A stretch of DNA of 64,000 nt, from NCBI GenBank assembly GCA_030704615.1, contig CM060732.1, forward strand, positions 74,586,001 to 74,650,000, read 5' to 3'. Both the position numbers and the translations under genes were made by a program. Of the stretch, positions 4,295 to 35,292 are shown piece by piece. The notes beneath the pieces are model-generated. The model was given only the letters and a program-made list of their open reading frames with translations. It was not told where the DNA came from and ran no database searches. The number at the start of each line of letters is the position of its first letter. The first letter of the stretch is position 1. This DNA comes from Takakia lepidozioides. Its lineage: Eukaryota > Plantae > Bryophyta.

Positions 4295-5072
4295 TGTTGG
4301 TATTTCCTATCCATGATTCATTGGATATTGGAGCTCCATAACAGGTGGAGTGCGGGGAACCTAAGTTGCAATCATCCAATGTTTTGTTAATGGGTTTTCT
4401 ACATATTTAATCGTAATTGCCTTCCAAGTCTTTGTTTATTACTACTTCCTACATGCCTGGACTCCCAACACGCTTATAGCCGGGACGAACCTTCAAATCC
4501 CTTCACAAAACGAATCTCGAGCCCAGGGAGATGGGGATCATCTATCTCCCGCCCAATGGCCCCCCCCTAAATCCCGAGGTGGATGAGTGTCCTACCTCCT
4601 AGGAAGGGACCGGATCCACTTTCCCAAGTCGGTCTCTCCTGCTTAGAGCGATCCCAAAATGCAACCTCAATGGTTAGTCCATCGGGTGAATGATAACAAC
4701 TCAACCTCTAGGTAATTCCCGAGGTCTAATAACAATGGCCATTCCTTGGCCCCCCCCCCCAAGCGGCCAGGTACTTGTCTTCAAATATCCTTGGCGGAAG
4801 GGGACGATACCGCCCTTAAAACTTGCGTTTCGAAGTTAAGGGGGTCCGGATAATATCCCTTAATAAAGGCGAATTACCCTGCTAAATAATAAAGACAAAT
4901 CATTAAAATATTCCTACAAATGCATGAAATTCGTAGAAATAGAGAATGATCGTAGGTTGCTCGAGCTAACTAAATTACCCTCAAGGTACCAGGGGAACAC
5001 CCTGGGAACGCTTCTTTATGCCGGGAGCGTGGGGAACTGCTCTCCTCTTGGGAGTGCCCCTAAATTACTACA
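4295..5072 (+). mobile_element. Candidate 3' LTR of gypsy A
   Basis: Follows the purine run CGGAAGGAAA (PPT-like); starts TGTTGGTATT and ends AATTACTACA (imperfect terminal inverted repeat). No second copy in the window to confirm. Confidence 0.45.
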
Positions 5073-5074
5073 CC

Positions 5075-6757
5075 AGAGAGAAGACTCCGGCCGAGGCCGG
5101 CGTAACTAAGAGCCACTTCGCCTTGCGGCTACTGCCCCCTTTCGGGGGTGGGCCCTATGACAAAAAGTGTCCAGGGGGACACCAGGTGACCGCTAAGAAT
5201 AGAAGGGGTGAGGGTACCTCTGGGTACCCAGGGGTATCCTGGGGGACCTAAGGTGCGTTTGAAGTGCCGGATTTCAGTTGGTGTTTGTTGGTGATAATAG
5301 CTGTGAGTGAACGGAGTGTCGTGAGATGGATTTCTTTGAAACATTTGTGGATGGGAAGAATGGGAATTTGGAAGTTATCGTGTATGTCCGTGATACTAGC
5401 ATTATGAATGCCACCTCGAGTGCCGGCTGTGATGACAGTTAACGGGCCGGTTTTCCAGCCACGCCTTCGGAGTGCAAGGATAAGCGGGGCATATTTTTGC
5501 CGTTTTTCTAAGATTGAATCATTTGGATAACGATCATGGCAAAATGTGAATTCAATGAAATGGATGGTGAGTTGTGGGGGAGGTGAGGTGGGGGGGTAAA
5601 ATGTTGATAGGTAGACCTTGGACGAGGAGTATGTCCAGACAAAGTCGAGCGGGGCATGAGCATGGTGTTTGGGTACATATGCATGGTAGTAGCCACGGTG
5701 GTACTGTGTGGTCGGGTGGCCATCCCTGGTAGGTGCCTGCATTCATGAGCGAGAACCAACGGGTTTCAGCACGTTTTAGAAAGAGTTTGTGGAGGTGCCA
5801 GACTGCCTGGTTATGACGCGTGATATGTAAGCCATGTATAACTGGGTGTGTACATTGGCTGATTAGATGTGGCCAAGTGTCACGAGCTTGGTGGGTGGTT
5901 GCACATAACGGGCAGTATGGGGATGGGAACAGATGTGGCCAGAAGATGTGTTTGCGCTGGTGGCCCATGTATTGGGCATATCGGAATTTGAGTGTTTGTC
6001 GGATTTGTGCGTCGGTGGTGGCTTTGGTTAGCCAGAAATGATTGGAGAGTTTATGGTGCAGTACATTGGATTTAGTCCATTTTTGGATGTGTACTTTGGT
6101 ATGGCTCATGGAGGCTGCCGCTTGTTTATTTGCTTCTCTGGTCAGAGTGGTCAGGAGGTTTCAGACTGGTCTGGGTGCAGGTGGGTCTGGAACGGGGTAT
6201 ATGATCCAGAAGGGATGGGTGTGGGCGATGTGAATAGGGTCGTTCGAGAGTTCAACTATGGGTTGGGAGGCGCCGAGTTGGGCGAGTAGGTCTGCTTCTT
6301 CATTACCATGGATGCCAGTATGCGAACGGACTTTGAGTATATGGACTGGGTGGCCTAGGGAGATGGCCCTCTGGACAATAGCGGCACTGAGGTTGCGGTC
6401 AGGGTGATGATGATGGGCAGAGGGGTGGGAGATGTGGTTGCGAATGAGGAATAGTGAGGTAAGGCTGTCGGTGAAGATGTAGTGTGGGGGGGGGAAGGTG
6501 TCGAGTAGAGAGAGGGCTTCATAAATGGCCATGAGTTCAGCCCGGAGGATGGTGGCAGGGCCAGGGAGCCTGAAGGCAATGCCTTCACTGGTGCCGGCGT
6601 GATAGATTCCATACCCTGCGTTAGGTTTGGTGAGGGATCCGTCAGTGTAATGTGAATTGGCCAGTGGGTATTTGGGGATAGTGTTTTGTTGATATATTGC
6701 AGGGATTGGGGGTAGAGGTGTTGTTGGCGCGACCTGGGAAGGGCGTGGTGTTGCTTC
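5075..6757 (-). mobile_element. 5'-truncated Dualen/RandI-like RLE non-LTR retrotransposon, copy 2 (RNase H, CCHC, RLE, 3' UTR)
   Basis: RNase H YTDGS...RAEL...TDS...KVRSHTGIHGNEEAD; CPLC-x8-WPH-x4-C; RHN; DILLV...IEFTFC...KRQKY; same 3' terminal structure and (CT)n tail as copy 1. Confidence 0.85.
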
Positions 6758-9700
6758 TTCCAAAGTGCCCTCCAAAATTCATTTGTAAACTTTGGATCGC
6801 GGTCCGAGACAATATCCTTCGGGAGTCCATGATGTTTGAAGACGTGGGCGAAGTAAAGTCGCCCCGTGCGCCGTTGCCATCTCCTTGGTGGGGATGAAAT
6901 GACCCATTTTACTGAACCTATCCACCACCACCATGATTGCATCGAATTCTTTTGACAGCGGCATAGCAGTCATAAAATCCATCGAGACACTTTCCCAAGA
7001 CCCCTCTGGAATCAGCAAGGGTTGTAACAGCCCCGTTTGTACTCGCTCTGGTTAAATTTGTTGGCATGTGGTGCATGTCTTGACATACTCCTCGGCCTCC
7101 TCCCTCAGTTTGGGCCAGAAATACTCTTTCTTCAAGAGTGCCGTGGTGTGCTTGGCTCCACCGTGGCCCGCAAGCGGGCCATCATGACATTCCTTCAAGA
7201 GACTATCACCGATCCCTCCCTTCGGCACATTGAGGCATTTTTGCTTGTACCGGAGCAGTCCATTTTGCAAGTGGAACTGCAATTTAACCCCCATCCTCAA
7301 GTCTGGCATCACGGACTTCGCCATCTCATCCTTCCGGTAAGCCTTCCAGATCTTTCTTTGGAGCGCCGTCTCGCCCCTGTACACCAACATGAGCTGCTGG
7401 CATTGGCCACCACATTGTCCCATCCCGGTTTGTACTGGATATCCACGTCGAACACCGCCAAAGTGTCTTGCCACCTAAGTTGTTTTGGGGACAACTTAGG
7501 TTGCGTGGCAAAATACTTCACCGTGACATTGTCCGTGAACACCTTCACCGGGTTGGAACCAACATAGTGGTGCCAAAGCTCAAGGCAATGCACCACCGCC
7601 TTAATTTCTTACTCGTGCGTAGACCACCATCGCTCCACTTCATTCAGTTTCTTACTTTTGTAAGCCACTGAACGTCCATCCTGCATGAGCCCACCCCCAA
7701 TTGCGAAGTCCGACGTATCTGTATGAATCTCAAATGGACGATCGAACTCCGGGATTTTTAGGACTGGAGCTTCCACCATCTGCTGCTTCAACTTGGCAAA
7801 AGCTTGGCCACAAAAAGTATTCCATACCCATACCTTGGACTTACACAGAAGGTCCGATAGCGGCCCCGCAATCTTGGCGAAATTTCTCATATACTTTCGG
7901 TAATAGGAGGCGAGTCCTAGGAAGGATCGCATTCCCGGGACCGAAGTCGGAGGCTCCTAGTCCAAGATCGCTCTCACCTTTTTGTCATCCATTTTGATCC
8001 CATCTTGTGTAATCACATGCCCTAGGAACTCTTATTTTGTGACCCCGAATTCGCACTTTGAAGCTTTGGCATACAACTTTCCTTTCCACAATTTCTGGAA
8101 CACCCTTTTTAGGTGCTCCAGGTGCTCTTCCTTTGTTTTCGAGTACACCAAGATGTCGTCGATGTACACGATCACAAAGTCATCCAACCACTCCTGGAAA
8201 AGGCTGTTCATTAGCGTGCTAAAGGTCACGGGTGCGTTGGTGAGCCCAAATATGAACCATATCTTGTCCTGCACGCGGTCTTCTCCTCATCTCCTTCCGC
8301 CAGTCGGATTTGATGGTAGCCGGAGCGCAAATCGATCCGGCTGAAATACTTCTCTCCTGCCAATCGATCGAAGAGGTCGTCGATCCTTGGCAAAGGGTAC
8401 CGGTTTTTGATAGTCACCTTATTTAGAGCCCTATAATCGACACACATCCGCAGCATCCCATCCTTCTTGTCTGCGAATAGCACCGGGGCTCCGTAGGGTG
8501 ACTTACTCGGCCGGATGTACCCCTTTGACATTAAATCCTTGAGCTGAGCCTTCAGCTCGACCAACTCTCTGTGGCTCAACCGGTAGGGCGCCTTGGTAGG
8601 CGGCTCCGATCCCGGTATCACCTCAATCTTGTGGTCAACTCCTCTACGCGGTGGCAAACCGCTTGGTAATTCCTCCGGCATCACATCCTGGTATTTCTCC
8701 AAAATCCCCTTGATCCAATCTGGGCTCGGCTCCCTATCGCCTTCTCCCTTCACTTGTCTTACGTAAAGCAAAAACTGGGGCTCGTGTGGCTCCTCCACAG
8801 CCCACTCCTTTGTTGACAGCAGGTTTATTCGCCCTCCCACTGGTTTGGGCGTTTCCGACACTCGTAAAACTTCGCCACCATTCCCACACGATAGTGTGAC
8901 TATTCTCTTGCGGCCATCTATGACCGCTCCGGATTTGCTCAAAAAGGTCATCCCTAAAATGAGATCCACGCCATCGATCTTGCAGATGGTGAAGTTCTCA
9001 CGTCCCTGGCTGAACGCACTTCAATAGAGGCCCCCACATCACTTGTTGGGAGCCCCAACTTTCATGCCGTTGCCGGTGTCATGAAGGAGTGCGACGCTCC
9101 TATGTCCACCAATAACGACACGTTAGTTCCGGAAATTATCCCATTCACGAACATTAACTGACTTCTTTTACGCAAGGCGCCAGTTTCCTGATACAACTCA
9201 CAGGAGTAGTTGCATACCTTGCAAGTCTTGGCGACCACCGCCTCCACCAAGCGGCTGATGGAATCTTCGGACAGCTCCGTGGCCGCCCGAGTCATGTTCA
9301 ATTTTCGGGGTTTCGTGTACTTCTTGGCCATGTGCCTGGGCTCCCCGCAATTAAAGCATACTCCATCGAATGTCGCCTTATGTCCGCCATAAGCCGCCGC
9401 ACCTAATTTTCTTTTCGGAGCACCAGGTGCCACCTTGACGTGTGAAGGCCCTCCCTTCGATTTCCACGTGCCATTATCACCGTGTGACCTATCCCACTTC
9501 TTTTCCGGTCGGAAGGAGTCACCCTCCCGGCGGGTCTTCTTGTGGTTCAGCTCTGTACGACCTTGTCTTTCGCCCCTAGGGACATCCGAGAAACATTCAG
9601 CCTTTTCAATTGCCTCGTTCAAAATCTTAGGTGGCTTCTCCTCCAACTTCCGTCTGGCCCATGGGGCCAGTCCCGCCACAAAGTTGAAGACCATTTTTGG

Positions 9701-11016
9701 TTCCGCCATATCCGCGACTTCAAGCAACAACACATTGAAAGCCTAAACATATCCCTGAATGTCATCCGTTTGCTTCAAATTCCTCATCTTGTCCCGGGCG
9801 AGCCAGGACGCGTTGAGGGGAACAAATTGTCTTTTCATAAGTTCCTTGAACCCACTCCAGTTCAAGGTTTCCGGGTTTGGACCTTGGTCGTGAAGGCGTT
9901 TCTGCCACCATTGTTGGGCATAGCCCCTCAAATAGGTGGGAGCCACTTCCACCCGATCCTCGTCACTCAACTTGGCCGCCCGGAAGTACTGCTCTAGCTC
10001 CAAGAGCCAGGTGTTGAGTGCCTTCCAATTTTGGACGCCCTCGAAGGTGCCGGGTTCCTTAGGCTTCACCTTAAACTTCGCCTTAGTGGAAGTGGCATTA
10101 GCCACCTTCAACACGTCTTTCAACGTCCCGCCAAACTGCGCCAACAACCCTTCTCAAAAAGCTGTTGGCATGGGAGACATCTGTTGGTATGGCGGAGCCT
10201 CCGGGAGGTCCTCGGGCTCCGACTCCCCAGATTCCTCCCGTTCTTGAGCGGCCTCCCTTTCAAAAGCATGAATCGCCTCCTCAAATTGCCGCTTCGGTGA
10301 CACATCGCCCCTATCGGGCTCACCAGGATCATCATCTTTCGGGCCGTTCCGCTTTCGCTTTGGCTTGCCTGACCCCATGATGAGACCGATCTCAAGGACG
10401 ATTGCGTACTCAACTCTAAGCTCTGATACCAAGTGTCGCGCACTTCCCCCTTTGCTCCTCCACAAGACCCTCTCTCAATTTGGGCCTAGTGGAAAATTTC
10501 CTTTGGTTGTTGGCAGTCCGGAACAGCTCCCCACACCTTGGGCGCTTTCCGGCTCGCACGCTTACTCTCTAGTTTTTGGTCACCAACGGGCTTGCACCGT
10601 TCTCAGGGTTACTACTCCCTATATATACTTCTGTGACTGTCCGCAGGGGTTTCACAAACAACCCAGTCATTTTATGGCGAACCACCACGAAAACCCTCGA
10701 TTCCCGGTGATGAGTCGCGGTGAGTCTTGGCCCACCCACCACGGCCCCATTGGACCGTGATGAGTCCCAAGACTCCCCACGACTCCCACCACAAGGTCTT
10801 CGCCCCATGGTGAGTCCTATGCCACCCCCACTAAGACCCACTAAGCTACCACCACCCCTCGTGGAACCACCCCCTAGTGAGCGCCTCCGCCTCCTTGAGT
10901 GCTTTGGGCACTCAAAGGTGCTTCGGCCCCCGTACCTATTGTTGCCACTGCCCCCACCACAGGGGCAGCCCCTCTTGTGTCCCGACCCCCTGCCCTCAAG
11001 GCAAAGGGCCGCGACA
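6758..11016 (-). mobile_element. Ty3/gypsy family B element (5' LTR, PBS, gag, PR, RT, RH, partial IN), chromovirus-like, degenerate
   Basis: LTR 11016-10434 (TG...CA); PBS TGGTATCAGAGC 10431-10420; gag knuckle CFNCGEPRH; LVDIGASHSF; CVDYRALN...DLRSGYHQ...YIDD; integrase SMDF...VVVDRFSK...SDRD broken at about 6758. Confidence 0.93.
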
Positions 11017-14000
11017 GTACCACTGAATACTCTGGCTCTTACTATGGCTCCACCCCACCTATTCATATTCTGCGTGGCACTATCCAAGGTGATACCCTAA
11101 ATCCATACCTCTTCATTATCTTTCTAGAACCACTACTGCGTTGGTTAGCTTGCGGCAATCTAGGATACCGCTACAAAACCTCACCCAATGAAATAACAGC
11201 TGCCGCCTATGCTGACGACTTAGCCATCCTTGCTCACAAACCCCAGCACCTAAACCGCCAAGTTGATAAACTATCCCGTTTTAACCAATGGTCCGGCATG
11301 GACTCTCAGTCTCCACAAATGCGCAGTCACAGCAGCCACCCATCACAGCAAATTCACCCGAGCCGTGATGGACTCTCAATGTAAACTGAATATCCATTAC
11401 CAGAATAGCCCCTTCCATGTCTTAGGCCCCGATGAACCTTACACATACCTGGGCATTCAGCTCGTCCCTTCACTCAAGTGGCACATCCAAAAAGCCACCA
11501 CACTCACCAAACTAGCTAACAAGAGTCTAGCTCTACTTCAATCTCCTATCCCAATTAGACCAAAACTAGCGATCACCCAATTGGTGCTCAAACCACAAGT
11601 CCAGTACGCCTTTCACGCTGCTCCATTCTTTCTCCCTACCATTCTCCCTGGTGTGTGCTTGATAAACATATCATTCTTACCAAACGAATATGTGGGCTTC
11701 CAACTAGCACCCCAAATGCCCTTACCCAACTCCCCGCGGATAGTTATGGTATCGGCTCTAGCCCCTTCATTACTTCTTATGCCCGCACGCTCGGTACCCA
11801 ACTTCTAGAAGCCCTTAACGACCTTGGGCGTCTTGGACTCATCTACCAAGGTATCGTCAGACACCTCGCCTCAAAATTTAATGGCCTCCACTCCCTCCCA
11901 ATCCTTTACCCGCAGTCATGCCGTCACTCCCCAACCGCACGCTCCTTACTCATTCTACGACAAATGCGTATTAGCCTGCAAATGGACCTGCCTGGCTATC
12001 CTAACACGGTGTCTTCACTAGAAGTTGCCTGGACCTCCAGCCCTTTTCTCCCCCAATTTGAAGCAATCCACCCCAGTCAGAAAACACCTATACTCAAGTA
12101 CTTTAAAGCTCGACACATCACTAACCTCACCCAACTCACCACTGCCACCGGTACCAAGTTAATAACCCCCCGTGAATACACTCTGAAATACTCTAGAGCC
12201 ACTACTAAGACCTGCCGATTCCTTCTATACCTTCGTACCTTATTCTGCTACCCCTCCACCTCATGCATCCTAGACTGTGACCTCCCATGCCGTCTCTTCC
12301 CACATAACACACAAGACTTGCTCCCTGAGTTCAGGTCAGCCCCGGCCCCCTCTATTCTCCATAAACTCCGATCCTCTCGCACAACCATACATCAAGAACC
12401 TACTACCCATGACTCTTCCTCCCAGCTTACCCATGATACCACTTCTCTACCACAACTCAGCGGCCACCAACAATCACCACCCTCTCCTACATGGTCTTCC
12501 CCACCGACACACACCCTACCCTCATCCACCCCTACCACACCACACTCCCACAACGCTACCACACCATCCCCTTCCCACACTAATCTCAACAACTCCAACG
12601 CTTTTATCATTGAAGCTATACTAGGGATTAAAACCCAGACTTCCACGGATTCATTTGGTGTGACTTGTATAGACACATACTACCTATGCAAATGGGCGGG
12701 CTTCTCAAGTGAAGACAATACCTGGCAAATTGAGGACGACCTCTTTGGTTCGCATGATGACTGTGACCCTGACCATAACCTGGCCCTTCTTATTGCTTTC
12801 TACAAGCGTACTAATACCAACTACCTCTCACACTTATACCAACAACATGTATCCCAAAAACTCAGACACTCAACATGTCTCTCGTCCGCTCCCCGCCGCC
12901 AACATTCTAGTTGACATCACAGAATGCAACCCCGACAAGGATATCCTTCATGACTCACCCATCATATGCACCGGCCCCCAAAAGTCCGCTATTCACTCTA
13001 ACAATGGTCAATTCCTTGGGCTCGTCCCTAACGACAGGATTGCCTGGTTATAGGCCCGGTACTCTTCCCACTCCTCCAACACTAGTCATTTACACCCACC
13101 TCTCCAAGACTTCGCTACCGAAATAAGTTGGCTCTTGGAGCGCTACCTCCGTGACACCCCCCACAAAAAACCCAGATCCGAAACCAAACTCTCTCAAGCT
13201 ATGTGTTATTTCCCACGATATCCTAACCCTTCTCATTACATCCTTCCAACTCACCCACTCATACTACTCTAGTCCACTCACTTGTCCCATAGACATCCAA
13301 TCATTCGCCAGTCCCAATCCCTGAGACTGCATCTTCGGGGCCTCTGGTTATGCCACCCAACACTCTTGGTCTGGCAGCCCCCCCCCCCGGGACCCCACAC
13401 CCATGAAGCTTTACAATGGGCTCGCTTTGCAACCCACACTTCCCCAACATCACTCACTATCCTTATACTCACTCACCAGCAATCACCTGATAACCCCCAT
13501 CCTTAACTGCAACTACCACCGGGCACCACACTACTAGCATCACTTGAACCAAGCCAGCATATATACTCAAAGAACCCACCCTTCCCTAAATATCTTATGC
13601 ATGAGGAGCCCACCATTACTCTTCTTCTACATATCCAACACGCATCCGCCCCTCCCATCCCACATACCATGCACGCCCACCTCGTCCACACACTCACGCG
13701 TACTCACGGCCTCATGGTCACCACCACCCTACCCGTCGTATCCCTTCCCCCACCTCACAGCTCTCATACCCAGGTATCTCAGTCACTTCCCATAGTCCAG
13801 CTGAGCAAATCCTGGATTAAAGCACCTCCCCGTCCCCTTCCTCTCCCCCCACCGATTCCAGTCACCTCACCGCCATATCATAACCATATGCCCCTCAAAT
13901 ACCCGCCACTTCATTCCCACTATACTGACGGTTCCCACACTCGACCCAACGCCGGAGACGACGTTTACCACGCTGCCTCAAGAATAGGCACATCCGCCCG

Positions 14001-15507
14001 ACTCCCTGGGCCTGCCACCATCCTCCGTGCAGAACTTATGGCCATTTACGTGGCCATCTCCCAGCTACCCTCATTCTCCCCTCCCCATTATATTTTCACA
14101 GACAGTCTAACATCACTCTTTCTTATTCGTAACCACCTAGCATGCCTCTCCTCACACCACCACCACCCAGACCGCAACCTCATTGATGCCATAACCAAAG
14201 GTGCCATAGACTTGGACCAACCAATTCACTTCCTGAAAAACCGCTCACATACAGGTATTGCTGGCAATGAGGAAGCTGACCTCCTCGCTCAAACTGGCGC
14301 TTTAGAGCCCTATATCGACCCAGCCGACGATCCTATCCACATTGTGCACACCCACCCATTTTGGCTCATACACTCCATCCCAAACCCTCCAGACCATAAG
14401 CAAATACATAACCTTCTTACCACCCTTAATAAGGAGGCCACTCAACAAGCTAGGGCATCTATGAGTCACACCAAAATCCACATTCAAGAATGGACTCTTT
14501 CCACCATCCTGCATCATAAGCTATCCAACAAATTTGGCACTCCAAAGCCGTGACTGATGCTCAAATCAAACAAACACTCAAGTTCCGATATGCCCAATAT
14601 ATGGGCCACCAACGTAAACACGTCTTCTGGCCCCGCCAATTTCCCTCACCAAACTGCCATTTATGCCTGCACAACCACCAGGTTCGAGACACTTGGCCCC
14701 ACCTCTTGAGTCAATGTACCCACCCGGTCATCCATGGTAACATGTCATAACCATCCTGTTTGGCACATCCACAAACTCCTTATGCAACGGTCCGGAACCC
14801 GCTGGTTTTCACTTGTTAACGCAGGCACCCACCAAGGCAAACCTCTAGACCATACTGTTCCACATTGGTTGCTCCCATGCCTATGTCCACGCTCTCCATG
14901 CACCTGCCTCGCCATGCTATGCCCTGATATCTTGCTTGTTCACGGCCTGCCCATCAATACCCAGCCGCCTACTTCCCCTTCATCACATATCACCATCTAC
15001 TTTATAGAATTCACATACTGTCACGATCGTTATCCTGCCCCCTCCATCTTGGAAAACGGCAAAAATATGCACCACTTATCACTGCTCTCCGTCGCAGGGG
15101 GTGGAACACAGGCCCCCTCTCTGTTATCACGGCCGACACTCGAGGGGGTATCCACAATGCTAGCATAACGGCGCTACACGACAAATCTCCCCTATCCACA
15201 AATGCTTTAAGACAATTCACCTCACAACCCTCCGTTCTCTCACAGCCATCATTACCAACAAACGGAAGCTAGAATCCAACCCACTTTCTGTTCCTTAGCC
15301 CTCCTCAACACCTTAGGTACCCATGGGTACCTAAGGGTACCCTTATGGGTACCCACCGTACCCCTTGGTACCTCCACCCCCCGGTTCCGGTGTCCACTGG
15401 ACACCTAGATTACTTATAGGGCCCACCCCCGAAAGGGGGCAGTAGCCGCAAGGCGAAGTGGCTCTTAGTTACGCCGGCTTAGGCTGGAGTCTTCTCTCTC
15501 TCTCTCT
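11017..15507 (+). mobile_element. Dualen/RandI-like RLE non-LTR retrotransposon, copy 1 (RT, chromodomain, PCIF1-like MTase fold, RNase H, CCHC, RLE), frameshifted
   Basis: RT GTIQGDTLNPYLF...YADDL...YTYLG; chromodomain 12603-12743; MTase-like 13202-13640; RNase H about 13915-14300; CCHC and RLE about 14655-15270; structured 3' UTR and (CT)n tail. The 5' part is cut off by gypsy B. Confidence 0.85.
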
Positions 15508-16500
15508 ACATGTCCACAAGCGCAGTCTCCAAATATATCTCGAAAGCCTCCCTGCCACATCCATGTTGAGCACACCCTGCGATCATGGTGTTCCATGATA
15601 CTCTACCTCGTTTAGCCATATTGTCAAAAGCTTGAAGCGCATCCTTTATGCTCCCACATTTTGCATACATGTCCACAAGCGCAGTCTCCAAATTTATTTA
15701 GCATGCAATTCCAGATTTAATGATGTCAGCATGGACCTCTTTGCCCTTCTCCAAGGCTCCTAGGCTGGCACATGCATTGATAACGCAAGTGAATGCGACC
15801 CTGTTGGGCGTTAGCCCTTTCTTTTGCATTTGTTCATACATCTCAATAGCCTCCCTGCCATACTCATGCAGAGCATATGCTGCAATCATGGTCCTCCATG
15901 AAACCACATCATGTTGTGTCATATTGTCAAACACTAGATGAGCATCCTTTATGCCCCTGCATTTTGCATACATGTCAACAAGGGTATTCTCCAGGATAGC
16001 ATCTGGCACGATTCTAGATTTGTTTATGTCATCATGGCCATGCCTCCCTTATTCCAGAGCTCTGAGGCGCATGCATTGAGAATACAAGTGAATGTGACCC
16101 TGTCAGGCGTCACCCCATCCTGTTGCATTTTCTCATAGATCTTGAAAGCTTCCAACAGCGTCCCCATGCTGAGCATATCCTGCTATCAATGAACTCCACG
16201 AGACCACATCTCGTTTAGCACATGCTATCGAACATTTGACGCGCCTTTTTCATGCTGCCACATTTTGCATACATGTCGATAAGGCTATTATCCAAATTGA
16301 TATAGGGTGCAATTTTAGCTTTCATGGTGTCAACATGCACCTCTTTGCCCCCTTTTCCAGGGCTCCTAGGCTGGAACACGCATTGAGAACACAAACAAAC
16401 GTGATTGTGTTGGGTCTCACCCCTGCTTGTTGCATTTGCATGTACATCTGGAAAGCCTCCCTCTACGCTGACACTGATCACATATCCACCCAACGAGCTA
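15508..16500 (-). pseudogene. PLS-class PPR protein pseudogene fragment
   Basis: Repeated P-L-S motifs (LVDMYAKCGSI..A..VFDNM..DVVSW; TF.C.NACASLGALEKGKEVH) with stops and frameshifts; truncated at the LINE tail. Confidence 0.9.
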
Positions 16501-18130: not shown

Positions 18131-21100
18131 TCAAAGAAACCGTGTAAGCTCCACTGCATACCGGCCCTTCTTTGTCACTGTGATTTCTCCTACCTGCAAT
18201 ATTCAACAGTTTGGAATCGTTTTCAGCATGTATACATGTATGTGAGAGCTTGGTAAAATCTGGACTCTAGAGTTGAGAGGTAACCAAAGATAAAATGAGA
18301 TAGCCACATCCAAGGTAAAGAAGAGCTCCCGAAGATGAAAACATAGGCACCAGATACAAGAGGAGAAAGAAACCAGAAAGAACGCTGTGAGAGGAGAGAG
18401 AGAATGTACTCATAAGACAATGTTTGCCGTAGCCTTGTGGCCATAGACCTGAGAAGAGAGAGAATATGTACTCATAAGACTTTGTTTGTGCCCATTGACC
18501 CGCGCCCAGTTGGAGCGGAACCCAAAGGGACAGAAACTACCTTTGTGAGGGGCTGACGCTGATAGTATGACCTACCTTGGGACAGACAATTGATCTAAGT
18601 TTTCCAGATATACTCTAGAAATCCCTTTACACAAGCATCTGCTGTGTGTGATATAGCTAGGCCCAAAAGGGCCTGGGCTTTTGGCTCGGCCCCAAGATTT
18701 TCAAAGTTAGTAAACAGAGGTCACAAATCTCTTGATGGATTTGAAGAGGGCGCCTCTCTGGTGAGAGTACCCAGGACAATGAATCAGAGAATGAATATTG
18801 TCTTCAAGTTGGAGGGGAGAGAGAGAGAGAAGATTCCGAGCAAAGCCAGCGTAAATAAGAGCAACTTCTCATATAACTGAGAGTCATCTAAGAGAATGAG
18901 ACAAATCAACTATACCCTGTATAACAGTGACCAGCTGTTATAACTTCCCACTGAATTCATCTAGTCCCAATAGACGGTGTCAACACGTAAACGTAGTTTG
19001 AGCATTCAAATCATAGAAACACCAGACTCATTCCCAAAGGAAGAGAATGTACTCATAAGATTGTTTCCCAGAACCTTGTGGCTATAGACCCCACGCCCAG
19101 TTTGGACAGAAACAGAGGGAGTAGACACTACCTTTGTGAGGGGCTCACTCCGGGAGTGGGACCTTGATATAAACAATTACTTCGGGCTTTCCAGATATCC
19201 AGAAAGCCCTTCACACAAGCATCAAGAGATTGTACTCATAAGACGTGGTTTGCCGTAGCCTTGTGGCCATTGACCCCGCGCCCAGTTTGAGCGGGAACAA
19301 AAGGGACAGAACCTACCTCAGTCAGGGGCTGATGGTGGTAGTGTGACTTACCATCATATATAGAATTAATCCGGGTTTTCCAGATATCCTCTAGAAATCC
19401 CTTCACACAAGTATCAATCTGCTGTGTGTGATTTGCCCAAAAACTAGGCCTCAGGAGGGCCTGGGCTTTTGGCTCAGCCTCGAGACTTTCAAAGTTGTTA
19501 AACAGGGGTACAGGCACAATTCCCTTGATAGAATTGAAGAGAGCGTCTCTTTGGTGAGAGAACCCCGGACAGTGTATCAGAAAGTGAATACTGTCTTCAG
19601 ATTGCCCACACAGCTGGCAATTGCACTCTCCCTTTCCTCTCTGCTTCTTTTTGCTGTTCAAAGGTAGGCTTCCTGCCCTGAGTTTAAATTTCAGTCTAGT
19701 GCCGAGAGTGGGTAGACCCTTGAGGTCATCCAAGATGTCCTCCCCCATGTCACTGACTGGAAACAAGTTCAGGGAAGTTTTCTGCCTAACTTCATTTTCA
19801 TCAGACAATCTCATGGCAACAGACATGGCTGAGGACACAACAGCCTCTAAGTCAGATTTATCCAGCAGGGTCAAGACTTGCGGATCCAGGTACAAGTCCT
19901 TGAGAATCTCTTCTACTCTCTTCTGCCAGGACTTAGCCTGTTTGACAGGGCGGTCCTGTTTCCAAGATATAGAGTCGATTAACTTAGGATATCTGGTGTT
20001 GGGCATATGTTGCAGCTGACCCCACCATCTGACCTTGAATTCATCTTTTCGGGAGCTTAAGGACGGAATGCCAAACTCACCCCGAACAGCCACATTGGCT
20101 GTTTTGGAGCATGCTGACATACACTCCTTAAGCACCCCCACTTGAATGGATTCTAGAGACTTAGCCTGGTTGGAGTTATCAACCCATATAGCAGATCCGT
20201 ACTCCAAGGCAGGTCTAATAACGCGACAAAGCATGGTTTTCTTAACCTCAGAGTTTTCCCCTCTGCAGTGGAAAAATTTAGTGAGCCCCAGAGCTTTGCC
20301 CTTGCCAGTTTGAACAACTTTCCGGATATGTGCATCCCAATTACAATTGGAGGAAAACTCAACGCCCAGGTAAGTGTAGGAAGGGAGGACCGGGATCTCT
20401 TGGCTACCCCACTGCCACTTAAGATCACTTCCTCCCTCTCCTCTGTCGTTGAAAGCTACCACTGCACATTTGCTGACATTAGCCTCTAGCCCCCAAAGAT
20501 CAAAGTATCTCTTCGCGCAATCAATCAACTCCTGGAGATTGGTTGGAGTCTCCCCTATGCCTGCGAAGTCATCCGCAAACATAAGGGCTGGTATGGTGGT
20601 ATCACCCACCCTTAACCCAAATCCCTCACTTTCCACATCCTCGAGGAGTTGATTGATGAAAACATTGAAGAGCAGAGGGGAGAGAGTACATCCTTGAGCT
20701 ACACCTTGGTTTATGTCAAAGAAGTTGGACTTCTGTCCGTTAACAGTGACACAGCTTTTGGTGTGAGCATACAAGTTGTGGACAACTCTCCACATCAAGA
20801 GAGACAGAGAGAGAGAGAGACACACACACACACATAACCTAACAAACATAAGTGGGGTGAAAAAAAGCCTCCCGCTTAAGCAGTCTGTTCTTGACTGAAG
20901 CAAACATATTGTAAGTAGATGTGTTTGGCTAGATCTCTAGACCAGGAGTGGACTAGCTAGATAGTAGTACGATAACTATGCCTCTCCATAAGCCAATCTA
21001 AGGCAGAAAAACTAAACTGGACTATTCATTGTGACATGCACCAGGGAGAAAATTATCTTTGAAATACCTCTAATCTTCCCTTCCCCTGTACTGAGACCAC

Positions 21101-24100: not shown

Positions 24101-26942
24101 CCGTTGTGTGGGCAACCTGAAGACAACATCCACTTTCTGATTCTTTGTCCTGGGTACTCTCACCAGAGAGACGTCCTCTTCAAATCCATCAAGGGAATTG
24201 AGCCTGTACCTCTGTTTACCAACTTTGAAAGTCTCGAGGCTGAGCCGAAAGCCCAGGCCCTTTGGGGCCTAGTTATTGGGCAAACCACACACAGCAGATT
24301 GATGCTTGTGTAAAGGGATTTCTAGAGGATATCTCGAAAATTCGGATCAATTGTCTGTTCCAAGGTAAGTCATACCACCGGTGTCAGCCCCTGACAAAGG
24401 TAGTTTCTGTCCCTTTGTGTTACGCTCAAACTGAGCGCGGGGTCAATGGCCACAAGGCTACGGCAAACAACGTCTTATGAGTACATTCTCTTGCGTTAAC
24501 AAGGCACAAGGGTACGGCAAACAATGTCTTGTGAGTGCATTCTCTTGTGTTAGTCATCAAAAGCTGCTAGTAACAAAATAGATGAAAAGAAAAAGTCAAA
24601 CTCATGCCACCAGACACATCAACTTTTGCCATTAAAATAGACGTTTAGGATAGTAATGTACAGCTAAAAAGGGACCATACCTGGGAATAGCCACCTGACA
24701 CAACAGCCCCCACATTGGAGAGCCTGCCTACTGCCATCAAGGCATCACCCAATACTGGCGGTGACAAAAAATCAGAATGCGCTACCTCCCATCTATCTGC
24801 TGCCCTTTGTCCCTGTCTCAAATACACCAAGAAACAAGCGTGAACTTAAGTGCAAGCAATGTTGTGTTCAATCGACTAGACTTTTAGTAGCAAATGCTTC
24901 CGTCTTAGGCATTCTGTCTCCTTGTACGAGTCATAGCAACAAGGATACAGCAAGGAGTAACAAAACTTCTCTCGCTCTGTCTGCGTCACACAAAAGAAGT
25001 TAGGCGTAAAACTTCCTTGGACTTGTTTCCAATCTGTCACATGGGTGAGGACTTGAGGATCTTAAGGGTGACCTGAAGGGCCTGCCTACCCTTGGCACTA
25101 GACTGAAATTAGACTCAGGGTGGGGAGTCTACCTTTGAACAATAAACAGATGCAGAGAGGAAAGGTAGGTTGTCAATGCCCACTGTGTGGGCAGCCTGAG
25201 GACAACATCCATTTTCTGATACAATGTCAGGGGTATTCCCATCAGAGAGCAACCCTCTTCAGGAACATTATGAACGTAGTACCTGCACCTCTGTTCACCA
25301 ACTTTCAAAATATCGAGCTGAGCTTATAGCCTTGCCCTATTGGGGTCTGACAGATCACACACAGCAGATTGATACTTGTGTGAAGGGCTTTGTAGAGAAA
25401 ATCTGGAAAGCCCGAACAAATTGTTTATATCAAGGTAAATTCCCACTACTGGAGTGAGCTCCTCACAAAGGTAGTGTCTGTTCCCTCCTGTTCCGTCCAA
25501 ACTGGGTGCAGAGTCTATGGCCACAAGGCTACGGCAAACATCTTATTAGTACATTATCTGTGTCGCACATACAGACTTCACACCTGTATTTCCATCACTT
25601 GTCAACCACTCACTAGTCAAGCAGTTGTGAAGTTCAGGAGAGGTGAGACATACCTGTTCAAGAATATGTGCGACATCATCCACGTTGCCCTTATCAACAC
25701 CAGCCAGTAACTCATTTTTATCCTCGCGGGATAGCACAGCTGCATAGCATACACCTGTGCCCATTCAACCCCTCTTTTAGATCAGATCCTCTTGTAAGAT
25801 ATCTGCTCTGCTCCATTTTCGATTGCAGGTTTCCTTGAGCCGATATAACAATACACGATGCGATACAGCTCTAACAGCCAAGAGAATGCACTCGTCAGAC
25901 GTTGTTTTCCGGAGCCTTGTGGGCCTAACAGCCAATAGTGAAGGCCCTCCAGGTTCCAAGAGCTGAAAAGAATGGACTTATGACTGGAGTTCTGATCAGC
26001 CTACAACTAGCCTTACTGTGGAGCCTACACTCTTGGCAACTTACTGTAACCTGAGGAGTTGTGATCAATTTGCAGAAAACCTGCCATGGCAATTACTAGA
26101 AGGAAGTCCAAGGACCCAGCTTTTACAACGGTTTAAACAAAGTTGCATTGATTAGAGATGGAATATCTGATTCTTACTCTCTCATTCCCTCTCTCTCTAC
26201 GCTAGAGCAAACAATGTCTTATGAGTACATTCTCTACGCTAGAGCAAACAATGTCTTTCGAGTACATTCTCTCAATCAACTCTTTCTGGCGGTGTATAGA
26301 TTCTTTCTTTCTTTCATTTCATTTCATTTCATTTTTCTCATTCTATGAGTTCCCAAAAGATGTTATTCCTGCTATGTCCACTTTTCTCGTTCAGCCCTGA
26401 AGTTCGGCGGAAGCTAATATGGCCTTCCTTCATTTTACATGCAAACAACCGGAGCCTACCCCTGACAGGGAGCAGTGGCCGCAAGGTGAAGTGGCTCTCA
26501 TTTACGCCAGCTTTGGCCGAGTCTTCTCTCTCTACAAACAACAGTTACCTTATCAAACGAAGATAAATGGCTCAAGTGGCTACATGTGTTTGGCCAACTC
26601 AATTCTCTCCCTCAATTTCCATACCTGTTGCCGATATGCTGCTGGTAATTTTCACTTTCCAATATACGTTGGACTGTCATATACGCGAATGATGATTACA
26701 TACGAAACAGCACCTCTAAGAAAGGAGCTCTAGATCGTCGACCAACATTTCTCGCTACCACAAAACGGACAAGTGGCGATGAATTGTAGCATACCTGCTC
26801 TGTGACAGTGATTCCAGAGACGGGGCTTAGTTACACGAGCTCGGAAAGAGATTGTGCCCAAGGTGTGACCCAGCAAGTGCAATGGTCGCGGTACATGCAT
26901 AGCCTGAGCTCGTATCACGTGCCCCATAGTACAAGCAGCCAT
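18131..26942 (-). CDS. ylmH: Plastid-targeted YlmH/Sll1252-like S4-domain RNA-binding protein, 10 exons
   Basis: Exons 26942-26795, 25754-25654, 24812-24681, 23725-23628, 22787-22682, 22208-22140, 21781-21717, 21598-21500, 21167-21068, 18193-18131. All introns GT-AG and phases are consistent. Motifs SDFLSPP, GGYSQAERCRI, THADFLGAVLGTGIAREKVGDI, SLRVDALASAGFRMSRSK, GDVVSVQGKGRL. Confidence 0.92.
18395..18810 (-). mobile_element. Tandem 3' fragments of the (TC)n-tailed LINE family C
   Basis: Two consecutive ...CTTATGAGTACA(T)TCTCTC ends plus degenerate C-terminal coding sequence, in the last YlmH intron. Confidence 0.8.
19040..20798 (-). mobile_element. LINE family C copy (5'-truncated RT plus C-terminal CCHC) followed by an older 3' fragment
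   Basis: GVAQGCTLSPLLFN, LMFADD, YTYLG, CQLC..ED..HFL..C. TCTCTTGATG lies at both ends of the young copy (candidate TSD); older fragment at 19040-19225. Confidence 0.92.
23982..24546 (+). mobile_element. LINE family C 3' fragment with a tandem second 3' end
   Basis: [16 protein letters not shown]...[10 protein letters not shown] followed by a repeat of the terminal segment at about 24505-24546. Confidence 0.88.
25005..25555 (+). mobile_element. Degenerate LINE family C 3' fragment
   Basis: Homologous to the C-terminal coding region and 3' end of the other copies. Confidence 0.82.
26190..26273 (+). repeat. Tandem very short LINE family C 3' termini
   Basis: (CT)n followed by two copies of GCTAGAGCAAACAATGTCTT..GAGTACATTCTCT. 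Confidence 0.75.
26451..26533 (+). repeat. Stand-alone diverged copy of the Dualen-like 3' terminal structure
   Basis: GGAGCCTACCCCTGACAGGGAGCAGTGGCCGCAAGGTGAAGTGGCTCTC...GAGTCTTCTCTCTCT aligns with 15416-15507. Confidence 0.75.
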
Positions 26943-27577: not shown

Positions 27578-30500
27578 ATGGGTAAGCAGGAGGCAAAAGA
27601 GAACCAGGAAATGGAGGAGCTGATCGCGAGGCTGAGGAAGCAATTGACAGAGTTAGGGCAGGTACATGTGCTGGCGGGGCTCTCTAGGGGCGAAGAGTGG
27701 CAGCGCCAAGCTCTCATCGACCAGCTCCGAAGCATTGATTTTTCTGTTTTCCAACACGCCTTGGTCGATGTCCTTCACACACTCCATTCTCCAAAACTGT
27801 GAGTGTGTATGTGGCTTTTCCTTTTTTTATGTGGGTTTTGCTCACCATGGAGACCAACCCACTATTGTGGACTGTGGGGTGCATAATCATCCTTTCTTTG
27901 ACGAGACCTTTCTGTCGGAAATGTCACGGGAGGTTTGATACAGGGGCAGGGATTAGCTACATTGTGGCCTCGATTCGGCTATCCTTGTTGGTTGAGGAAA
28001 AAATTATCGAGAATGAATGTCAAGAGTTCAAGGACATCGTGGGGCTCATGAGTTTGTTAGACACTCCAGGCAGTTGTATATACGAATCATCTATGTCGCA
28101 TTTCAGAACATCTTTGGTTTGTGATTGTCCGGTGCTCAATTCACTCTACGCATCAGCTATCAATCTGAGTGAGCCATGCAGAGGAATATGCTTAGTTATG
28201 TATTCGAGAACGATTCCAGAGTTATAATCCTCTTGACAGCCTATGGGATAGACTGTTCAAGTCTCTCATAAATAGTGGAGTACTATTGTCATCTCATCTT
28301 TTGCACGGTGTGGTCTTGTGCTTTGGATTTGAGGGAGATCAGCCCGATCAGGCATCCAGAGCCGCCTCCATCATTCCCCTGCTCACATTGGGAGAACTTT
28401 CAGCACTGGCTGGTGAATGCCAACAATGAGGTCGAGAAGAGCATGGCAGCTGTGGATAGAGACACTGCACGATGGTGGATGGAAGGACTCAAGCTTGTGG
28501 CAGATGGAAAGGTGGCGACATTGGTTCTTGCTGGGGGCCAAAGCACACGCCTTGGGCCGGGTGCCCCTCCTGTCAAAGGCATGCTAGAGCTAGGCCTCCC
28601 ACAGCCCAAGTCGCTGTTCCAGCTACAAGCAGAGCGATTGTTTCTTGTTCAGGAGCTTGCTTCTGAAGTATGTATCCGAACACCTTAGTGTAGTCTGTAG
28701 ATCTACCAGGAAAGTAGTTAAGGTGTGGCTAGACTTGTTGGATCGGCAAAAATTGGCAGCCCTGTACTGTTCAACTGCTAAACCATTGGCTTCCTTGTCT
28801 CCCCAATCTAACTGGCAACACAAGTCCCCCATGGTGGTCATTCACACATCTGAGTGAATGTGTGGCCAATTTCAACACGTGGGAGTGCATCCTTGACGTT
28901 TCACATAGTAACCACTGGGGACCGTCACTGTGTTCTGCTAAAGCAATCTGGGCTGCCTTGGGGGCTCATCACCTTCTCTCCTGGTGAGAGTGCAGGCTCC
29001 CAAAAGGGGGCAATATCTGCATGGGGAAGAGGCTTGTTTTTATGCATCTCAGTCTCTTAACTCTCTCTCTCTCTCTACCAGCCCTTATGTTTGCGGATGA
29101 CTTTGCAGGCATAGGGGAGACTCCAACCAATCTCCAGGAGTTGATTGATTGCGCGAAGAGATACTTTGATCTTTGGGGGCTAGAGGCTAATGTCAGCAAA
29201 TGTGCAGTGGTAGCTTTCAACGACAGAGGAGAGGGAGGAAGTGATCTTAAGTGGCAGTGGGGTAGCCAAGAGATCCTGGTCCTCCCTTCCTACACTTACC
29301 TGGGCGTTGAGTTCTCCTCCAATTGTAATTGGGATGCACATATCCGGAAAGTTGTTCAAACTGGCAAGGGCAAAGCTCTGGGGCTCACTAAATTTTTTCA
29401 CTGCAGAGGGGTCAACCCTGAGGTTAAGAAAACCATGCTTTGTCGCGTTATTAGACCTGCCTTGGAGTACGGATCTGCTATATGGGTTGATAACTCCAAC
29501 CAGGCTAAGTCTCTAGAATCCATTCAAGTGGGGGTGCTTAAGGAGTGTATGTCAGCATGCTCCAAAACAGCCAATGTGGCTGTTCAGGGTGAGTTTGGCA
29601 TTCCATCCTTAAGCTCCCGATGAGATGAATTCAAGGTCAGATGGTGGGGTCAGCTGCAACATATGCCCAACACCAGATATCCTAAGTTAATCGACTCTAT
29701 ATCTTGGAAACAGGACCGCCCTGTCAAACAGGCTAAGTCCTGGCAGAAGAGAGTAGAAGAGATCCTCAAGGACCTGGACCTGGATCCGCAAGTCTTGACC
29801 CTGCTGGATAAATCTGACTTAGAGGCTGTAGTGTCCTCAGCCATGTCTGTTGCCATGAGATTGTCTGATGAAAATGAAGTTAGGCAGAAAACTTCCCTGA
29901 ACTTGTTTCCAGTCTGTGACATGGGGGAGGACATCTTGGATGACCTCAAGGGTCTACCCACTCTCGGCACTAGACTGAAATTTAAACTCAGGGCAGGAAG
30001 CCTACCTTTGAACAGCAAACAGAAGCAGAGAGGAAAGGGAGAGTGCAATTGCCCGTTGTGTGGGCAATCTGAAGACAGTATTCATTTTCTGATACACTCT
30101 CTGGGGTTCTCTCACCAAAGAGACGCTCTCTTCAAATCTATTAAGGGAATTGTGCCTGTACCCCCGTTTACCAACTTTGAAAGTCTCGAGGCTGAGCCAA
30201 AAGCCCAGGCCCTCCTGAGGCCTAGTTTTTGGGCAAATCACACAGAGCAGATTGATTGTTGTGTGAAGGGATTTCTAGAGGATATCTGGAAAACCCGGAT
30301 TAATTCTTTATATGGAGGTAAGTCTTACTACCAACGTCAGCCCCTGACAGAGGTAGGTTCTGTCCCTTTTGTTCCCGCTCAAACTGGGCGCGGGGTCAAT
30401 GGCCACAAGGCTACGGCAAACAACATCTTATGAGTACAATCTCTTAGGGGCGTGAGGCCAAGAAAGCTGAACTCATTAGACTCCATTTTGCTGCATCATG

Positions 30501-33598: not shown

Positions 33599-35292
33599 CT
33601 GTCGTTTTCAAGGATGATCTTTTGCCTTATAACCAATATTACATCCAAAAGTAATAATTACTAAATCTAATTCAGGAACAGCACAAACAGTCACGTTTCC
33701 CTTTTTCTATGCAAAAACAAAAAAAAAAGAAAAAAGGTGCCGAGGGGTGAAATAACGCAGGCTTAGCAGAATAGTGAGTCAACGGCTTCGTTAGTGAAAT
33801 TTCTTACTGACGTCGAGACTAAACGAATGGATTAATAAGGAACTACGGCAGGTTAGTGAAGAGGTTAGTGGGATGATCCCGAGGCGCATGCTGTCACGTC
33901 ATGCGAGAGAAATGATGTCGCTGCATGTGCGGCGCCATGAAGGCATTCCCATCATGGCCCCACAATGTGCCACATCGGTGGGGGCCCCACCGCCCATTTA
34001 ACTAGGGTTAGTCTGGTTCACTTTTGGACGAACAGAGAAGATACGGATGAAACACCCCTGATAGGGACGTACACGTACGTTATATGGGCCCAGATATACG
34101 AGTACGTTCCTTAAATACTCGTACACTCGCGGCAATCGCAGTCTGAAGGGTACTACTGCACGTCGTCGTTGATGACTGTGGCTTTCGAGCGACGATCGGG
34201 GCAAGGATTTGCAGCGCACAGAGCTTTCGATCTGGCGGGGCCCCACCACAATCTGACCTTGTCTCGTCTTTCTGGTGCCCTGCCCATCTCTCTGCTCTGT
34301 TTGTGTTCCGCTGCAGTCTAGAAATTGTATTTTGTGTTATAAATTTGATGTTTTCTTCTCCTGTTCTGTTTCAGTCCGTGTGAGTCTTGTCGTGATTGCG
34401 CTTGGATGAGCTTGGACTTGTTGGACATCTGTTGTTGTAAGGAGCTTTGCTTCAGGCTAGATTTCCCTTCCAATTATACCTTTCTGGTTTGTCTGTCGGG
34501 AATGTCTGAAGGGCGGTGGGCGGTGTTGGTGTTGTGTTTACCTGGAATGTCACTTGTTGTTGGCAGCTATGGCCAACAGTGCTGTGGTTGTTTTCGATGT
34601 ATAATGTACTAGTTTCTGAGATTGTGTGAGTTGACCTTGGGTTGCTGAGTTGGCCCGGTAGTTGACCCATTCTTGATCGAGATCATGTAGGAAGGTAGTC
34701 AGGGAATCCTCAGCTTGAGATCCGAATTAGTGGTGAGGTCTTGTTTCGCAGACAGAGGTTTTGTCTTACTAGCACGATCGACAGGATACTACCTCTTTTC
34801 GAATTGCTAGAAAGCCGTGTACCTGATTCTGCCAATGCACGCGGAGTCGTCCATTCGAGGGGTTTGGGTTGCTCCAACCTACTCTTGGCGTTGGCTAGAG
34901 GAGTTGAGATTGAGAAGAAAGAGGCCGATAGAGGAGAGTTTCGGAGAGAACATAGGGGGGCAATTCATTGCTAGCAGATTCGTTGGTACCACTATATGGC
35001 GGCATATTCTCGGGTTTGGGAGATGACAGATAGACATTCACTGTTTGGGGATCTGAAACCAGCACTTTTACTTGGTTGATCTTCCCCGTGATTTAATCTA
35101 GAGTAGTTTCACAAGACAATCCACTGGAAATAAATTTGCTTACCAGTACGATGAGATTGTAGGCGTCAGTTCGTGAATTTTGAGATTCAAAGTGAAAAAT
35201 TTTGTTCCGTTTGTAATCGTTAAGTCGGCTCCTCTGAGTCTTCAGTGTAAATACTCCTCTACGTGAGGTAGATTTAGATTGAACTTTTGGTA

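Follow-up and report, generated by a model that had tools for sequence, protein, structure and literature searches.

[quoted passage not shown] The combination of the two is treated as unique to Dualen (PMC9977147, PMC5029228), and in the papers searched the only hosts listed for the group are green algae and cryptophytes (PMC4438587, PMC5029228). The Dualen/RandI elements of Chlamydomonas (DualenCr and the active Dualen-4b_cRei) and of a cryptophyte (Dualen-1_GCr) encode a single polyprotein comprising APE, RT, RNase H, CCHC and RLE; a microsatellite tail of the RandI type is known (PMC3747384), and the accessory domains vary, with a cysteine protease in the algae and a SET methyltransferase and a C48 peptidase in the cryptophytes (PMC5029228). 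Two domains discussed below have precedents in other mobile elements. Chromoviruses of the Ty3/gypsy type carry an HP1-like chromodomain, presumably aiming their insertions at marked chromatin. The cellular cap-specific m6Am methyltransferase PCIF1/CAPAM binds the Pol II CTD through a WW domain at its N-terminus, and a PCIF1-clade, probably inactive methyltransferase (MT) domain is present in DIRS1 retroelements (PMC4738411).

The window, by which we mean the whole analyzed stretch of 64,000 nucleotides of Takakia lepidozioides DNA, contains at 11017-15507 (+ strand) a decayed non-LTR retrotransposon, copy A, with RT, a chromodomain, a PCIF1-like segment, RNase H, CCHC and a PD-(D/E)xK endonuclease. 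It is very probably a dead member of the Dualen/RandI group in which a chromodomain and a PCIF1-fold domain have become accessory domains. The motifs listed for RT, chromodomain, RNase H, CCHC and RLE in the initial annotation are all found where it had put them and in the order it gave, as seen both with Pfam and in alignments with relatives, and a three-frame reading shows this order to be kept on the + strand across three frames. In-frame stops occur at 13051, 13322, 13504 and 14551, and there are at least five frame changes. The genes beside the element (PPR, STICHEL and UDPGP) bear out the earlier view that the host is a plant. The region around copy A is a nest of transposons. A Ty3/gypsy LTR retrotransposon lying outside the LINE (6779-11016, - strand) has its LTR terminus (TGTCG..) exactly at 11016, bounding copy A; because it ends precisely at this 5′ edge, everything upstream of the middle of the RT is missing, and simple 5′ truncation of the ordinary kind is ruled out. 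A second occurrence of the same gypsy LTR start lies at 57839 (+).

What is left of the RT is the second half of its core (11017-11650), recognized by Pfam (RVT_1, E 2.8e-8), by tblastn and by three-frame reading. It starts abruptly at 11017 and changes frame once near 11300, with QGD and YADD in the frame of 10992 and YLG in the frame of 11263, and it is 39-57% identical (tblastn) to residues 79-288 of the RT of L002, a relative recovered on a metagenome contig. The RT thumb and a Pro/Ser/Thr-rich linker follow (11655-12600; 31% identity to a Psilotum nudum transcript) and form the first part of a 419-aa open frame (11655-12914) that runs uninterrupted from the thumb through the chromodomain into the start of the MT domain. 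The RNase H domain (13921-14302; Pfam RNase_H, E 1.6e-9), located between RT and RLE, has the motifs YTDGS, RAEL, FTDS and GNEEAD and all four acidic catalytic positions, and lies in a frame of 318 aa (13597-14553) whose first part is a Pro-rich linker; a protein word-index search with this frame as the query gave no match. The CCHC zinc knuckle (14655-14717) stands upstream of the endonuclease (14737-15269; (R)HN, PD, IEF, EK..KY), which changes frame once near 15040-15100 and is also matched to L002 by tblastn. Neither CCHC nor RLE of copy A has a Pfam match; the RLE domain has no Pfam model, and its assignment comes from motif alignment, with CCHC, PDILLV, IEF and K..KY of copy A and of a second copy in the window (copy B, below) aligning with L002 and with an element of the green alga Gonium pectorale. 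The RHN motif that had been listed is intact in copy B and reads CHN in copy A. A 3′ UTR (15270-15507) ends in (TC)7.

Between the chromodomain and RNase H lies the segment earlier called PCIF1-like (12826-13503), and this likeness holds up: tblastn matches it with E 1e-16 to the PF12237 ORF of the intact relative L002. The segment is decayed, with stops at 13051 and 13322 and frame changes near 13200 and at a C-run near 13380, and its own broken pieces have no Pfam match, falling below PF12237 detection when taken alone; fold and motif are read from the relatives. These pass Pfam PF12237 with 35-40 bits (cut-off 31.1), and phmmer aligns a relative's domain with zebrafish PCIF1 (E 1.6e-5), placing ANPPF opposite AHPHN. 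An AF2 model of the relatives' domain built from an alignment of 101 sequences reached a pLDDT of 78.6 (an earlier model from 26 sequences, with pLDDT 51, was too poor for use). The structure search that the initial annotation had proposed returned PCIF1 only, the significant Foldseek matches being six PCIF1 entries (E 3.5e-7), and VIA comparison of the model with PCIF1 gave Z 12.8 across 205 residues, the next fold reaching 5.4; the MT-family profile matched PDB sequences only weakly (E 0.087). Judged by this predicted structure, the domain is a genuine member of the PCIF1-family fold. It corresponds to human PCIF1/CAPAM residues 417-638 and has in common with the cellular enzyme the FxSPL.C and D..FGS.G motifs and a P.EW..TP stretch. 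It differs in lacking both the WW domain and NPPF and in sitting within a retrotransposon polyprotein; Pfam scans of the window and of the relatives revealed no WW domain.

The position of motif IV is occupied by HPHN in the L002 family, by HPEH in Gonium and by GPHT (PGPHT) in copy A, so that of NPPF only the first Pro is kept and all other positions are replaced. Because the catalytic NPPF has been exchanged for a conserved HPH(N)-type motif, the domain is probably not an adenine methyltransferase, and the suggestion that the element contains a nucleic-acid-modifying fold becomes doubtful, since the replacement extends throughout the family. One could argue instead that the domain is still active as a methyltransferase, its motif IV being of a non-canonical HPH type, and acts on the element's own RNA cap, on cDNA or on target DNA for a purpose such as evasion of host sensing or silencing. 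The motif region is strongly conserved (family consensus GYAHPHN), with GYAHPH kept among members that are just 45-50% identical and AHP kept in Gonium, the fold appears intact in the model (Z 12.8), and in many relatives the reading frame is open across the domain. We nonetheless consider activity unlikely given the loss of all of NPPF bar its first Pro, and no active N6-adenine methyltransferase is known to us in which an HPH-type motif occurs. The analogous DIRS1 domains, moreover, have been judged inactive (PMC4738411).

The Gonium element carries an MT-like domain with the motif AHPEH (hhalign 91%, E 9e-7), although this segment alone matches neither Pfam PCIF1 nor any PDB entry. Since a chlorophyte element has the same domain, the MT-like domain of the probably inactive, PCIF1-fold type is no novelty of land plants. 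It has been met in a retroelement polyprotein before: DIRS1 likewise has a PCIF1-clade MT domain with its catalytic residues replaced (PMC4738411). DIRS1 elements differ in having a tyrosine recombinase, terminal repeats and the order RT, RNase H, MT, whereas the LINE has RLE (with APE in relatives), places MT between RT and RNase H, and has no tyrosine recombinase of the DIRS1 type.

The assignment to Dualen/RandI draws on near-intact relatives on metagenome contigs, which have the same domain order plus an N-terminal APE. Copy A is without its 5′ part, and no APE match was obtained within the window; the initial proposal of a Dualen-like RLE LINE with RNase H is strengthened by L002, L008 and L009, all of which add the N-terminal APE, and L001 likewise combines this domain order with APE. 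In many members the APE belongs to PF03372 or PF14529; that of L002 gave just weak ExoIII matches in PDB, and no protease domain was found in L002. Full-length relatives consist of an ORF1-like part, a 2A-like peptide, APE, RT, a chromo(-like) segment, the PCIF1-fold domain, RNase H, CCHC, RLE and a structured 3′ UTR. APE together with RLE constitutes the dual-endonuclease layout, the defining Dualen/RandI arrangement. The family resembles Dualen/RandI elements in a polyprotein that unites RT, RNase H, CCHC and RLE, together with the APE observed in relatives alone, and also in its microsatellite-type 3′ tail and its accessory domains of a variable kind; it differs in its host, a plant with PPR and STICHEL genes, and in the chromodomain and PCIF1-fold domain between RT and RNase H. 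In the literature searched, which extended to reports other than the original Dualen description, we found neither domain described in Dualen elements. The initial annotation had raised the possibility of an undescribed retroelement system; what we find is very probably a Dualen element with accessory domains, one of which, the PCIF1-clade methyltransferase, has its precedent in DIRS1 (PMC4738411).

The RT comparison fits this assignment in that a relative's RT is nearer to R2 (E 1.5e-24) than to L1 ORF2p (2.5e-9). Its best solved-structure matches are R2 proteins, as might also be expected if the family were another early-branching RLE clade (R2, NeSL/Utopia, HERO, R4, CRE) that had gained RNase H and APE independently. 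Utopia demonstrates that gain of RNase H is possible in RLE elements, but its RNase H lies upstream of RT (PMC4640811), and APE with RLE has been reported for Dualen only (PMC9977147, PMC5029228). Furthermore, the part comprising MT-like domain, RNase H, CCHC and RLE is common to the Gonium element, from an algal group in which Dualen is common. R2 shares the C-terminal CCHC and PD-(D/E)xK endonuclease and a structured 3′ UTR used for priming, but it lacks APE, RNase H and both the chromodomain and the MT-like domain, and its insertion is 28S rDNA-specific, whereas one insertion in the window (copy C, below) is at an unrelated site. Independent gain in another RLE clade is thus quite improbable, and we retain the Dualen/RandI placement, by which a plant lineage broadens the range of Dualen beyond green algae and cryptophytes.

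The chromodomain of copy A (12603-12750) is HP1/Chp1-like. It scores 33.1 bits with Pfam Chromo (E 5.4e-8) against a curated cut-off of 25.1, and the PDB entries closest to it are those of CBX1/HP1-beta and S. pombe Chp1, with CDY also matched. The W and F of KW.GF align with the aromatic cage of CBX1, and the first cage aromatic would be the F of FIIEAIL, as deduced from where the Pfam match starts. In relatives the corresponding position holds a homologous segment (hhalign 96.7%); that segment is unrecognized by Pfam and gave chance matches only in a PDB profile search, and no chromo-like segment was detected in the Gonium element. In chromoviruses the chromodomain forms the C-terminus of the integrase of an LTR element, whereas here it follows the RT thumb of a LINE, and we found no earlier account in the literature of a chromodomain in a LINE.

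A chimera, in which an RLE LINE acquired the chromodomain of a chromovirus and part of a host PCIF1 by insertion into copy A only, might be imagined in a transposon nest with a gypsy element adjoining, but it can be dismissed, given the single 419-aa frame in which the chromodomain is joined to the RT thumb and to the beginning of the MT domain, and the same order of both segments in single open frames of L002, L008 and more than 100 database proteins. Nested foreign insertion of these segments, which the initial annotation had itself named as the finding that would overturn its reading, is contradicted by the relatives, where both segments share one ORF and occupy the equivalent position.

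In the mechanism we propose, the RT would recognize the conserved 3′ hairpins described below and prime where RLE and/or APE has introduced a nick, (TC)n would be the element's own tail, and RNase H would remove the template. The chromodomain may tether the complex to H3K9-methylated chromatin, by analogy with chromoviruses, and the PCIF1-like domain, with adenine methylation lost, may bind the element's own capped RNA or the Pol II machinery instead. A chromodomain in a LINE offers a simple way to test chromatin-guided target-primed insertion. More tentatively, the domain of PCIF1 fold, in which AHP(H/E) is conserved, could be ancestral to Dualen and indispensable to it throughout the range from chlorophytes to land plants; it would then be a captured cap-methyltransferase that now reads the capped RNA of its own element or modifies it in a non-canonical way, and the plant lineage may have added to it the first histone reader seen in a LINE, steering insertions to heterochromatin. 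If so, DIRS1 and Dualen, two unrelated classes of retroelement, made independent captures of one host enzyme. A conserved PCIF1 fold without NPPF is common to the family and the chlorophyte element and parallels the MT domain of DIRS1, which suggests that Pol II-transcribed retroelements have repeatedly taken up the cap-methyltransferase fold for some end other than methylation.

The second diverged copy noticed initially is present on the - strand as copy B, a diverged subfamily copy (5075-6775; homology 5075-6677, with the ORF reaching 6775) that is 70% identical to copy A and spans only the portion from RNase H through CCHC and RLE to the 3′ tail. At the 5′ end it adjoins a gypsy integrase, which is cut after ..LWKK, and no target-site duplication was seen. 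Between copies A and B dN/dS is about 0.1, showing purifying selection between the two subfamilies. The 3′ tail is conserved far better than the coding sequence, the last ∼85 nt (15421-15492) being near-identical among copies that are otherwise 70% identical. It is predicted to fold into three GC-rich hairpins, for which the three copies show no compensatory changes, and the tail had no exact match among the JGI metagenome contigs scanned. Copy C consists of an 85-bp solo 3′ tail (26450-26534, + strand) with an 8-bp target-site duplication on both sides, CAAACAAC at 26442-26449 and 26535-26542, and it is an insertion of the target-primed type. Targeting of (TC)n microsatellites is ruled out here, as copy C inserted within CAAACAAC.

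Window positions 11017-15507 (+ strand; copy A) encode a non-LTR retrotransposon polyprotein, reduced to its C-terminal two thirds and spread over three frames, with Pfam matches to RVT_1 (E 2.8e-8), Chromo (E 4e-7; 5.4e-8 for a trimmed piece) and RNase_H (E 1.6e-9). The motifs listed in the initial annotation are all found: QGD, YADD and YLG in the reverse transcriptase (RT), YTDGS, RAEL, FTDS and GNEEAD in RNase H, a CCHC knuckle at 14655-14717, and (R)HN, PDILLV, IEF and EK..KY in the restriction-like endonuclease (RLE), these last aligning with those of relatives. Copy A is a dead element: stop codons interrupt the frame at 13051, 13322, 13504 and 14551, and the frame shifts five or more times. 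Its sense strand contains 14% G, versus 23% across the window; depletion to 11-12% is also seen in the relatives at L002 2962-12297 and L001 5500-11700, whose flanks have ∼23%, but not in the Gonium pectorale element (30%).

In a full HMMER search, the 419-aa frame running from the RT thumb to the chromodomain matched 121 proteins, mostly fragments, including a Psilotum nudum transcript and a G. pectorale protein. Near-intact elements are present on contigs from JGI metagenomes (L002, L003) and from a large ENA assembly (L001, L008), with the order ORF1-like region, 2A-like GDIEKNPGP, Exo_endo_phos, RT, chromo-like segment, PF12237 (PCIF1_WW), and RNase H-CCHC-RLE; all of the window domains align to L002 in unchanged order. 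The N-terminal endonuclease belongs to PF03372 or PF14529 in many members. An AP-endonuclease (APE) combined with an RLE has been described as unique to Dualen/RandI elements (PMC9977147, PMC5029228), and RNase H located 3′ of the RT in an RLE element has likewise been reported only there (PMC4640811). The RT of a relative matches that of R2 at E 1.5e-24 versus 2.5e-9 for L1 ORF2p, which is in keeping with a position near the RLE clades. In L002 the 2A-like ribosome-skipping motif lies at ∼5200-5260 (in the frame of 4945-5346), immediately 5′ of the APE domain, and sets the polyprotein with the enzymes apart from a long ORF1-like region of low complexity. L001 and L008 (ENA ERZ25073694; 140 and 733 kb) are very long, eukaryotic contigs from a 'metagenome' assembly, and carry many copies of a related dual-endonuclease LINE whose common 3′ UTR exceeds 300 nt and does not resemble the tail in the window.

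The window chromodomain resembles those of two H3K9me readers, CBX1/HP1-beta and Chp1, and retains the KW.GF cage residues. Its homologue at the same position in L002- and L008-type elements (BLASTP E 1e-6; hhalign 96.7%) has drifted so far that neither Pfam nor PDB profiles recognize it; no chromo-like segment was detectable in the Gonium element. A single open frame holds the RT thumb, the chromodomain and the first helix of the methyltransferase-like (MT) domain. This shared frame, together with the homologous placement of both domains in relatives, shows that neither is a nested foreign insert, an outcome that would have counted against the initial annotation.

The segment first annotated as PCIF1-like is borne out by several comparisons. 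The window pieces by themselves fall below Pfam detection, but align with the domain of L002, which is intact, at E 1e-16, and that domain and more than 100 database relatives pass PF12237. Zebrafish PCIF1 aligns with a close relative over 148 residues (E 1.6e-5). An AlphaFold model built from 101 sequences (pLDDT 78.6, pTM 0.76) has significant Foldseek matches only to six PCIF1/CAPAM entries (E 3.5e-7 to 8e-6), and VIA-align against human PCIF1 417-638 gives Z 12.8 over 205 residues, versus up to 5.4 for generic Rossmann methyltransferases. The catalytic NPPF motif is lost: ANPPF of PCIF1 is AHPHN in the aligned relative, and the window copy has PGPHT at this position. GYAHPH is almost invariant among members only 45-50% identical, and Gonium has a counterpart with AHPEH in a single 1167-aa open frame spanning the MT-like domain, RNase H, CCHC and RLE. 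The domain is thus an old one under constraint, and it is very unlikely to be an N6-adenine methyltransferase. For DIRS1 too, the MT domain has been grouped with the PCIF1 clade and considered inactive (PMC4738411).

Dualen/RandI was known from green algae only in a 2015 Repbase-based survey (PMC4438587), and a later report added a Dualen from a cryptophyte, which carries SET and C48 domains (PMC5029228). Our literature search, whose scope excluded the original Dualen paper and Repbase, found a PCIF1-like domain or chromodomain mentioned for no LINE.

Copy B (5075-6775, − strand) extends from RNase H through the 3′ end and is 70% identical to copy A in DNA sequence. The dN/dS between them is ∼0.1, with dS saturated, and the two subfamilies therefore separated while they were working elements. 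The final ∼85 nt are nearly the same in both copies, with an exact 37-mer in common. Copy C (26450-26534, + strand) is an 85-bp solo tail with the 8-bp direct repeat CAAACAAC on both sides, the signature of a target-primed, heavily 5′-truncated insertion; it also shows that (TC)n is part of the element and not of the target.

Plain 5′ truncation of copy A is ruled out, since 11016 is the exact LTR terminus (TGTCG...) of a Ty3/gypsy element (6779-11016, − strand). This element encodes gag, protease, RT, RNase H and an integrase cut after ..LWKK, at the point where copy B starts; it lacks a 3′ LTR and sits between copies A and B, both of which have their 5′ ends towards it. The region is therefore a transposon nest that has been rearranged at least once. 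The LTR start is found again at 57839, in a copy at 57839-58184 (+ strand), and a further LTR copy occupies 1-169 at the window start.

In the mechanism we propose, the RT would bind the conserved 3′ hairpins (predicted; the three copies show no compensatory changes) and prime on a nick made by the RLE, the APE or both, with RNase H clearing the template. The chromodomain may bias insertion to H3K9-methylated chromatin, which would fit both the nest in the window and the part that Dualen is reported to play in the make-up of Chlamydomonas centromeres (PMC8226300). For the PCIF1-fold domain, a role as a module that binds either capped RNA or the transcription machinery is proposed.

Two LINE-type RT remnants, at 19236-20903 (− strand; a 555-aa open frame with RVT_1) and 29021-30433 (+ strand), have just 23-26% identity to the Dualen-like RT and are thus of another clade. 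The host is a plant, as the genes 3′ of copy A show. A PPR gene fragment (15506-16493, − strand), made up of several short frames with PPR repeats, adjoins the 3′ end of copy A, and a second PPR-like stretch lies near 57.2 kb (∼57145-57272). Farther out on the same side, past the fragment, are a UDPGP gene and a STICHEL-like gene (35287-39456, + strand) with a DNA polymerase III gamma/tau-type ATPase and a STICHEL DnaA_N-like domain.
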